From Blastocystis sp. Blastoise (lineage: Eukaryota; Protista; Bigyra: Opalinata): 64,000 bases of DNA. This document shows, in pieces, positions 44,185 to 46,876 of the stretch. The stretch's first letter is position 1, and each line of letters begins with the position of its first letter. Below the pieces are notes generated by a model. The model did not search any database. It had not been told where the DNA came from and was given only the letters and a program-made list of their open reading frames with translations. Position numbers and translations under genes: made by a program. Location: assembly GCA_039096225.1 (NCBI GenBank), contig JBBPEB010000015.1, positions 1,612,001 to 1,676,000 of the forward strand, given 5' to 3'.

Positions 44185-44592
44185 AAATATCTTATTTGAA
44201 TATGTCTTTTTAATTGTTATTTGTAATATTACTATGATATAAAATATATCGTCTGTTTTTGGTTTGATTTGATTTAGTAATATTTCTTTTGGTAAACATT
44301 ATATATATTTTTTTAATATATCAAGTTCATAAATTCTATTCGTTTTGTTTTTTCAATTATTCTAACAACAATTATATACCCAATGTTCTTTTTAATATCA
44401 TTTTCATCATAGAATTAAGACATTATTGTAGAATACGTCTTCCATAATAATATTATTGACACCTCATATAGAATAAGTTCATAAATCTTGTTTTAATAAA
44501 ACAAACAATTATTCTTGTAAACAGAAGTTTTTTTTTTGGAAGTTTCTGTTCTTCTAAATTATATTTTATTGTTATTTATTCTGTTATTTGAA

Positions 44593-44994
44593 ATGGTATC
44601 TCTTCCACTTATTGGTGAAGTTACAGTTATAAAAGCTGCTTTTCTTGGATTATTGTTTGGAGCCATATTAGGTCTTCTTGATCGTTTAACTCATTACATT
44701 ACTGTCTGGCTTATTCATGTTCTTGGATGTGAAGAAGAGGATAGAAAGGGACGTGAAGAAGAAATGAGAAAACGTGGACTTTTGCCGTATATATTTATAT
44801 AAATTGTTGTTATCTTTATGTCTTTCTTTTTCTCATAAGTTTGAAAATATATATAATGTATATATAAGTGTATATACGCTATATTTTATAATTCTAGTCC
44901 TAAAGAGGAAGTGAAAGAACAAATTGGAGAAGGACATGAGTCTGATGAATCTTCAGAGACCAAATCTTTAAATGATAAAGAAAAAACTGATTAG
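44593..44994 (+). CDS. Small membrane protein with an acidic/charged tail; 2 exons
   Basis: Hydrophobic AAFLGLLFGAILGLL segment; one GT-AG intron; TAG at 44992-44994. Confidence 0.6.
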
Positions 44995-45389
44995 TATTGA
45001 TTTCATTTTAATTATTTAGAAATGTCTTTATTATGATTAACGTGTAGTTATTTCTGTTTTAGCTGTATTTATTGTGTTTTTGTTTTCATTTATTTTAAAA
45101 AGTGTTGAATATTATCAAGAAACTTAGAAATTTAAAACAAAAAAAAGAAGTATACACATAATGAAGTTGAATAAAATATAAAAAAAGGAATAGAAAAGAA
45201 TTATGAAATCAATACAAATAATGAAAAGTTTGATCTCATTAGAGAAATTGAGCATAAATATTACTATCAATACTAAAACTGCAAATGATTAAGAGTAAAA
45301 TGAATGTAAAAGAATTTGAGCATTAAAGAAAAGGAAGATATATATACAAAATTACTATATATACAAATAATAGATATATAGAAATGAAG

Positions 45390-45979
45390 TTACTCTACAT
45401 CAAATCCTGCACAATGTACGTAACCATAAATACTATTAAGAATAAAAATTAATTGACTTTCTTCACAACCACCAGGAATATAAAACATAATATTATCTTC
45501 TAATTGATATCTATTTGGACATTCTTTACAATATAAACTTACATTGACCTATTTATAATGTATATAATAAATAGAATAAATAGAATAAATAGAATAAATA
45601 GAATAAATAAAATAAATAAAATACACAAAATAAATAGAATAATGTTATATATATACAGTTCCGACTTTATTATGTCGACTACATGAGGGTGTAGTACATT
45701 CCCCGCGTACTCGAAGGAGGTCACGAAACGTACTTTGACCCATTATCAGGCTTGTAGAAGGATCGACTAGTATACTTAATTTACTATACACAAAGTATTG
45801 TATACATATATATAGTATTACATAGACAATGCTTTTATAATATTATTATATAAACTACGATAATCATGAATATAAAAATAATTAATATATTTCTGATAAC
45901 AAAAAATACAATAATATAATATAACAATATATATAAAGAATAGTATATATATAAGAATAATATATACATATATATATAA

Positions 45980-46036
<57 letters not shown>

Positions 46037-46218
46037 CACATTTAGGACATATATATCTCCATTTAATTGCTGCACCGACGGTCTCACAGAATCGACATGT
46101 AAAACGAAAATTCTTTTCAGTGATAACTTCATTTAATATTGAATCTTTCTATATATGAAAATATGCATAAATATTAAATAAATATATCTAACAATAAATA
46201 TTAAAAAATAGGACAAAC

Positions 46219-46258
<40 letters not shown>

Positions 46259-46414
46259 CACATACAGATTGTCGTGAAACTAAGATTTTTGACATTTCGA
46301 ATACATTACTATTTTTAATTTGAGAATCATCTTCTAAAACATGTTGCATATGAATTAAACGTAATTCAACGGCAGGAATGTTTGATTGTTGCTAGAAAAT
46401 AAAATTATTAAATA

Positions 46415-46453
<39 letters not shown>

Positions 46454-46876
46454 AGAATAATATATAATAAATTAAAAAAAAACAATAAACATATATATGA
46501 ATACTTGAAGACTATTTTTAACTTCTGACCATTTTTGGTTGGGACTAACACGAATACTATAGGATACGTTATCTGTGAAAAGAAACGAAAGACTAAATTG
46601 ACCATTGCTTCGCGCTTTTGCATCGTTTTGATTTTGTAATTCCTTCTTCTTTTTCATAAAGTTAACAACTCTATTGAATGAATATTGATCACATCCAACT
46701 ATTTCATCGTCTTTCTTTTCATGTCCTTCGGCTAAAATGATCAATTCATCCTCAGGAATGTTATAGTTATTACTCAAAAAACGACGAAGCAAACGAAATG
46801 TTGCATCCTTTTTGATTCCAAGATATATGGGTGTCTTTTTACTACACTCAACAACTTTAATTTTGTATTCTTCCAT
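45390..46876 (-). CDS. Tandem ubiquitin-like domains plus a Parkin RING0-like zinc domain, about 300 aa, 5 exons
   Basis: NIPEDELIILAEGHE and NIPAVELRLIHMQHVLEDD (Ubl); FTCRFC-x12-CPKC-x29-CTTPSC-x14-CKEC. Confidence 0.7.

Follow-up and report, generated by a model that had tools for sequence, protein, structure and literature searches.

Does a protist encode the regulatory half of parkin, without its ligase half, as a protein in its own right? The question is raised by a gene in Blastocystis sp. Blastoise, whose genome is 33.3 Mb in size with 23% GC. A first-pass annotation of this DNA had read the gene as two ubiquitin-like (Ubl) domains followed by RING0, the cysteine-rich zinc domain of parkin that is also called UPD, in a stand-alone protein with no RING1-IBR-RING2 (RBR) ligase module. 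The window analysed here is a stretch of 64,000 nucleotides of contig C4, and the gene lies on its minus strand at 46876..45390, in five exons (Table 1). The claimed build of the protein is confirmed by RNA, and a second gene of the same build is present elsewhere in the genome. The product is a non-catalytic Ubl-Ubl protein whose two-zinc domain is probably RING0-like.

Gene model, transcripts and Ubl domains

The four introns all have GT..AG borders (GTATTC..CTAG, GTATGT..ATAG, GTATAT..ATAG and GTATAT..ATAG). The five exons are joined, with no extra letters, in RNA contigs from two independent studies, one being an organism-specific RNA study (X1; record 2, 1042 nt) and the other a polyA gut metatranscriptome (X2; record 5, 937 nt). 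The five-exon gene proposed from the DNA is thus confirmed. Its spliced product is letter for letter KAK8803622.1, a protein of 298 aa that is described in GenBank as a hypothetical protein of Blastocystis sp. Blastoise. The gene model was searched exon by exon, and KAK8803622.1 was used for all work on the whole protein.

Table 1. Features of the Ubl-Ubl-zinc gene (window positions)
Feature	Position	Strand	Content	Basis
Exon 1	46505..46876	-	aa 1-124: Ubl1 (~aa 4-75), Lys-rich linker, first half of Ubl2	RNA contigs, translation
Exon 2	46266..46391	-	aa 125-166: second half of Ubl2, Ser158, no C-terminal Gly-Gly	PF00240, ubiquitin alignment, RNA contigs
Exon 3	46036..46148	-	aa 167-204 (codon 204 split): C184, C187, C200, C203, K195-x-R197	RNA, paralog conservation
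Exon 4	45657..45783	-	aa 205-246: long loop with F223-R-D-L-L, third Cys pair C233-x4-C238	RNA, paralog
Exon 5	45390..45548	-	aa 247-298 and TAA (45392..45390): C253, C256, tail, predicted helix ~aa 276-292	RNA, AF2
3' untranslated region	45250..45389	-	transcripts end at 45279 (X1) and 45250 (X2)	
Eight-Cys zinc domain, RING0-like candidate	45471..46115	-	aa 178-272; introns 3 and 4 lie inside	ESM Atlas neighbours, Foldseek/VIA on parkin 142-220, paralog

Both transcripts end approximately 110-140 nt beyond the stop codon, at the positions given in Table 1, and there is therefore no further exon after the stop. The convergent neighbouring gene has its stop at 44994 and its transcript end at 45052-45062. 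Taken together, these positions confirm the stop codon, a short 3' UTR and the exon structure as proposed. They also bear out the claim that there is no room for an RBR module before 44994, since the reading frame stops at 45390 and transcription has ended by 45250. No IBR or RING match was found in KAK8803622.1 using hmmscan against Pfam. With neither RING1-IBR-RING2 nor the context of a catalytic cysteine, the protein itself cannot be an RBR ligase.

Each of the introns is largely a single microsatellite or short tandem repeat, namely (TA)n, (ATT)n, (TA)n and a 10-nt unit, and the repeat tracts are located at 45951-46044, 46209-46269, 46420-46450 and 45560-45630 of the window. The convergent neighbouring gene (44536..44994) encodes a small membrane protein and has one intron. 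In X1 it is spliced at a GT..AG joint, 44786/44898, while in X2 positions 44783 and 44898 are joined with ACC between them, and the X2 contig also deviates at 44703 and 44736. Such a pattern suggests a different strain in the gut metatranscriptome, not alternative splicing.

The second of the two Ubl domains (Ubl2, aa 102-162) belongs to the ubiquitin family PF00240, with E 8.2e-8 and a score of 32.3 bits (cut-off 25.4; hmmscan, Pfam). In the ungapped HMMER alignment to ubiquitin, the sequence R-L-I of Ubl2 falls on R42-L43-I44, and Ser158 falls on Ser65, where the first-pass annotation had indeed placed a serine. Both paralogs have serine at this position, which is the same residue as in ubiquitin itself. 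Ubl2 ends with no Gly-Gly and so is not conjugatable. The first domain (Ubl1, approximately aa 4-75) is below the Pfam cut-off, with a match to Rad60-SLD at E 0.075 and 13.3 bits. Its residues 5-57 match the Ubl repeats of P0002, an unrelated protein with four such repeats, at a BLASTP E of 2e-6, and Ubl1 of the paralog is over the PF00240 cut-off (E 2.3e-6, 27.7 bits). The assignment of the first domain as a Ubl, weaker in its own match, is thus supported by the paralog.

The eight-cysteine domain and its paralog

Following Ubl2, the protein contains eight cysteines arranged in four pairs, with the pattern C184-x2-C187-x12-C200-x2-C203-x29-C233-x4-C238-x14-C253-x2-C256. The same domain occurs in a paralog on the plus strand of contig C16 (L008:2079-3422, corresponding to C16:1033079-1034422), which was reached through a weak six-frame match of exon 1. 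The paralog has the same build of Ubl, Ubl, eight cysteines and a C-terminal tail, and has no RBR; it stops before the next gene downstream, which is eIF6. It also has five exons, the splicing being read by eye. Intron 3 of the window gene is missing and an additional intron follows the fourth Cys pair, so that an 80-aa exon corresponds to exons 3 and 4 of the window gene and is followed by a 19-aa exon carrying the fourth Cys pair and then a 32-aa tail and stop. The intron within Ubl2 is at the same codon as the junction of exons 1 and 2 in the window gene. The paralog was used as separate exons, and its 19-aa exon 4, which the aligner failed to place, was left out of the alignment used for folding.

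The two are 25% identical over exon 1 and 47% over exon 2, and their zinc domains are 37% identical. All eight cysteines are kept, with spacings of 2/12/2/29/4/14/2 in the window gene and 2/12/2/28/4/14/2 in the paralog. Also kept are T-C-R-[FY]-C-E-T-x-G-A, R197 and [FW]-R-D-L-L-x-[LV]-R-G-x-C. The residues K195, E232, P236, Y252, C274, C292 and the F-D-V-E end are not. The motifs on which the parkin reading had been built therefore fare differently. Both the K195-x-R197 pair and GEC..P.C are present in the window protein, as claimed, and so is a tyrosine (Tyr252) at the equivalent of K211 of parkin; the lysine and GEC..P.C are lost in the paralog, which has GVCINEGC in place of the latter. 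The tails share the pattern L-x2-L-N-x2-Y-x-Y-x-H in a MAFFT alignment but have no similarity by BLASTP. The FDV-like C-terminus was considered as a remnant of W-F-D-V in parkin and rejected, as the paralog ends in G-A-L-E and the tails show no BLASTP similarity. No third copy was found in the genome using a profile of the two paralogs; a weak third match at C4:2205122 is noise.

Searches beyond this genome yielded no relatives. Word searches of 5.8 billion proteins with the whole protein and with residues 168-298 gave none. HMMER with exon 1 against 1.84 billion representatives returned only the protein itself and two unrelated weak matches. A word search with exon 1 of the paralog found no relative within its length window of 0.55-1.75x, which says nothing about longer relatives. 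Metagenome scans with the protein and with the paralog alignment also found nothing. The combination of domains is a new architecture around a probably RING0-like domain, so far found in this genome alone.

RING0 or zinc ribbons

In the N-terminal half of parkin (PF00240 and PF17976), too, a Ubl precedes a domain of approximately 85-95 residues with eight ligands for two zincs. The ligands of parkin RING0 are C150/C154, C166/C169, C196/C201 and C212/H215, and the eight cysteines of the Blastocystis domain would be putative ligands collinear with them, including the unusual C-x4-C third pair. The last putative ligand is Cys here, and the last ligand of parkin is His. In both Blastocystis genes a phase-0 intron sits six codons ahead of the fourth Cys pair, which may be a close though not identical counterpart of the phase-0 intron of human PRKN at the junction of exons 5 and 6, five codons before C212. 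Arginine is found in both paralogs at the position of R163 of parkin. There are also clear differences. The Blastocystis protein has two Ubl domains where parkin has one, lacks the RING1-IBR-REP-RING2 of parkin, and has a C-terminal helix after the zinc domain, unlike the parkin half. The linker from Ubl to zinc domain is approximately 15 residues, and that of parkin approximately 65. The host is a stramenopile rather than an animal, and there is no match at the HMM level.

The profile search makes this last point in detail. No match to PF17976 (gathering score 25 bits) was found at E <=10 using hmmscan with KAK8803622.1, its residues 165-298 or the 80-aa exon of the paralog, although the filters in HMMER hide matches above an E of approximately 0.1-0.25, so that a weak signal to a single family may escape hmmscan. 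A six-frame search of the genome with PF17976 found nothing, the domain being split there by introns. No parkin chain in the PDB was found at E <=10, either with phmmer or with the two-sequence profile. The best PDB sequence matches are to ordinary zinc ribbons, none of them significant. Yeast eS31 matches pairs 3 and 4 at E 0.8 (phmmer), with the identical C-x4-C-x14-C-x2-C spacing; the fingers ribbon of USP15 gives a non-significant E of 0.9; and L37Ae matches pairs 1 and 2 at E 0.35 with the two-sequence profile and E 1.2 in the exon search. In Pfam, the families matched by pairs 1 and 2 are HypA, Zn_ribbon_6 and TFIIB, with E values of 4e-4 to 3e-3. Searching the five exons singly against Pfam and the PDB gave weak Ubl and zinc-ribbon signals only.

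Structural models point more towards parkin. The ESM Atlas contains a model of this exact protein (pLDDT 0.57). When aa 174-262 were compared with the Atlas, as representatives of 7.7 million clusters, the four nearest rows were all parkin clusters carrying PF17976, with a TM by query of 0.52-0.56 and 73-75 of the 89 residues aligned, while the best non-parkin rows reached 0.37-0.45. With aa 170-298, parkin was again in the first row. AF2 run with a three-row alignment, which contained no parkin sequence, generated one model with a pLDDT of 56.5, the most confident part being a helix at model residues 105-121. AF2 with the single sequence of residues 168-298 gave a pLDDT of 33 and was unusable. 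In Foldseek, parkin was the only family to recur with the AF2 model and had the highest TMq (0.26-0.35), but with E >=0.8, a probability <=0.23 and a model of low confidence. In the VIA alignments, model residues 2-95 fall on parkin 142-220/222 and so on precisely the UPD, with 72-75 residues aligned at 12-22% identity. One of them, of model residues 7-95 with residues 144-220 of the chain, is compatible, for a model of pLDDT 56.5, with a register of Cys on Cys. The Z scores for parkin are 2.0-2.2, and the double zinc ribbons of Rpb9/C11 tie with them at 2.2-2.3, neither being significant. Parkin was absent from the top 50 of a wide PDB search with the AF2 model, which gave noise only, as did comparison of the AF2 model with the Atlas.

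The first-pass interpretation is thus supported in part, and its claim that the domain is RING0 is plausible rather than proven. The spacing of the cysteines, the place of parkin as nearest neighbour of the ESM Atlas model and its recurrence with the weak AF2 model argue for the claim; the missing match to PF17976, the missing PDB parkin, the low Z scores and the lack of relatives from which covariation could be read argue against it. Background from the literature also enters here. According to Wauer and Komander, the fold of the UPD resembles no structure in the PDB, and nothing in the human genome resembles its sequence (PMC3730226). RING0 is so far known from animal parkin alone. The description of the parkin subfamily as animal-specific (PMC2904391) lowers the prior for the RING0 reading. 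We nevertheless lean towards a RING0-type fold or kinship, which is consistent with the models but statistically unproven, and infer both zinc binding and the RING0-type topology.

An alternative that we consider doubtful, though deserving of attention, is that the domain is made up of two independent zinc ribbons in sequence (pairs 1 and 2, then pairs 3 and 4), and that its likeness to RING0 is convergence of spacing with no kinship to parkin. This would explain why the best sequence matches are ordinary ribbons (L37Ae, HypA, Zn_ribbon_6 and TFIIB on the first half, eS31 on the second), why Rpb9/C11 tie with parkin and why PF17976 finds no match. Those ribbon matches are, however, also non-significant and each covers half of the domain (41-48 residues, compared to 72-75 for parkin), and all ribbon clusters lie below the four parkin clusters in the ESM Atlas. 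The two halves of the domain have no detectable similarity to each other, and a single integrated domain would suit the conserved 29-residue loop, with [FW]RDLL, that separates pairs 2 and 3. The genome's own eS31, moreover, has C-x2-C rather than C-x4-C. It is barely credible, by comparison, that the gene lacks a function of its own, being either what is left of a decaying, once complete parkin-like gene or a fragment annotated in error. Its orphan status among 5.8 billion proteins and its very divergent sequence would fit such a fate. Yet both studies contain a spliced, polyadenylated transcript whose frame is intact, and two paralogs at 25-47% identity keep the eight cysteines, both Ubls and the exon structure, which requires long-standing purifying selection. 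The paralog comparison can be said largely to refute this explanation.

The likeness to eS31 merits a further comment. Ubiquitin-eS31 (RPS27A) is, like the protein considered here, a ubiquitin fold followed by a zinc ribbon, and yeast eS31 shares R-x-EC-x2-P-x-C ... LYC-x2-C with it in addition to the identical spacing. The eS31 match, however, covers pairs 3 and 4 only, the basic N-terminal segment of eS31 is missing, and the Ubl is not a cleavable ubiquitin. Membership of eS31/S27a was accordingly rejected, as PF01599 has no match on KAK8803622.1 and there is only the phmmer match. The true Ub-eS31 gene of this genome is on the minus strand of contig C17 (L006:1486-1845, E 9.6e-25). Because its first knuckle is C-x2-C (CPIC) where yeast has C-x4-C, the zinc domain is not a recent copy of it. 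At least two introns interrupt the ubiquitin part of the Ub-eS31 gene.

Possible function and partners

In parkin, phosphorylated Ser65 of the Ubl binds to K161, R163 and K211 of RING0 (PMC9194792; the pocket is also described in PMC3730226). A similar phospho-Ubl/RING0 switch had been proposed for the Blastocystis protein. The equivalent residues are K195, R197 and Y252 in the window protein and A, R and M in the paralog, so that only the arginine is conserved; the pair of lysines, K161 and K211, is not, nor is there a conserved basic pocket. This part of the proposal is unsupported, and such a switch would be a guess. A predicted complex of Ubl2, the zinc domain and two zincs had a score of 0.00, which speaks neither for nor against binding.

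It was also asked whether the missing ligase might be encoded separately, the Ubl-Ubl-RING0 protein then regulating an RBR in trans as RING0 and the Ubl do in cis. There is no shortage of candidates, as at least 12 loci in the genome bear an IBR, including four RBR-ZZ paralogs and a multi-exon RBR gene on contig C33. Phospho-Ubl is reported to bind to parkin RING0 in trans (PMC11368401). None of these RBRs adjoins either paralog, however, and none of those examined has the parkin-type RING1, PF17978 giving only noise in the genome (E 0.07). The phosphate pocket also differs between the paralogs, as noted above. Separate RBR genes are present, but none is adjacent and none of those examined is of parkin type, and we regard a parkin split into two genes as improbable.

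On the preferred reading, the gene encodes a non-catalytic protein of the ubiquitin system in which Ubl1 is followed by a non-conjugatable Ubl2, by a putative two-zinc domain to which the four Cys pairs contribute, and by a short predicted helix at the C-terminus. In the UPD, loops 1 and 4 bind one zinc and loops 2 and 3 the other, giving an elongated fold (PMC3730226), and the zinc domain most likely adopts this fold with its loops paired in the same way. Its most likely role would be as a hydrophobic protein-binding platform, which the Ubl domains would link to the Ubl or ubiquitin receptors that they engage. The protein would act as an adaptor or regulator, with a putative binding partner. 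In parkin, residues F146, W183, F208 and F210 of the UPD hold Phe463 of RING2 (PMC3730226). Aligned by eye, the corresponding residues are F180, F223, V249 and L251 in the window protein and L, W, F and I in the paralog, and we speculate that the positions of a hydrophobic groove are common to all three. Equally speculative is the idea that the conserved C-terminal helix may fill or cover this groove in cis. In architecture only, the protein can be likened to the UBL-UBA shuttle factors (Rad23, Dsk2 and Ddi1) and to Ubl-zinc-finger adaptors, which are also noncatalytic and have an N-terminal non-conjugatable Ubl and a small C-terminal binding domain. Unlike the shuttle factors, it contains neither a UBA nor any other domain known to bind ubiquitin.

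Both the autoinhibition and the activation of parkin centre on RING0, which is also a drug target (PMC11412986). If the domain is what it appears to be, the protein would provide a minimal system for what RING0 by itself binds, and would bear on the order in which the domains of parkin were assembled, a question raised in the discussion of PMC9194792. It might be, though we suggest it tentatively and would not expect it, that RING0/UPD did not originate in animal parkin but is an older free-standing module associated with Ubls, later joined to an RBR to make parkin, or that Blastocystis long ago took up a parkin-like gene from an animal host and trimmed it. In either case the two Blastocystis proteins would show RING0 acting alone. 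If the domain is only a pair of convergent zinc ribbons, the protein would be an ordinary lineage-specific Ubl-zinc-finger adaptor.

Finally, the RBR genes of this genome have features of their own. The four RBR-ZZ paralogs (L001:1569-2702(-), L002:1396-2541(-), L003:1658-2767(+) and L004:1483-2577(-)) are intronless and encode proteins of approximately 365-380 aa, comprising RING1-IBR, a charged coiled segment, RING2 and a ZZ-like Cys-rich C-terminal end; they form a lineage-specific family. The multi-exon RBR gene is on the minus strand of contig C33 (L005:1700-2900) and has long (ATT)n/(AAT)n tracts between its exons, which in frame would read as poly-Ile/Leu.
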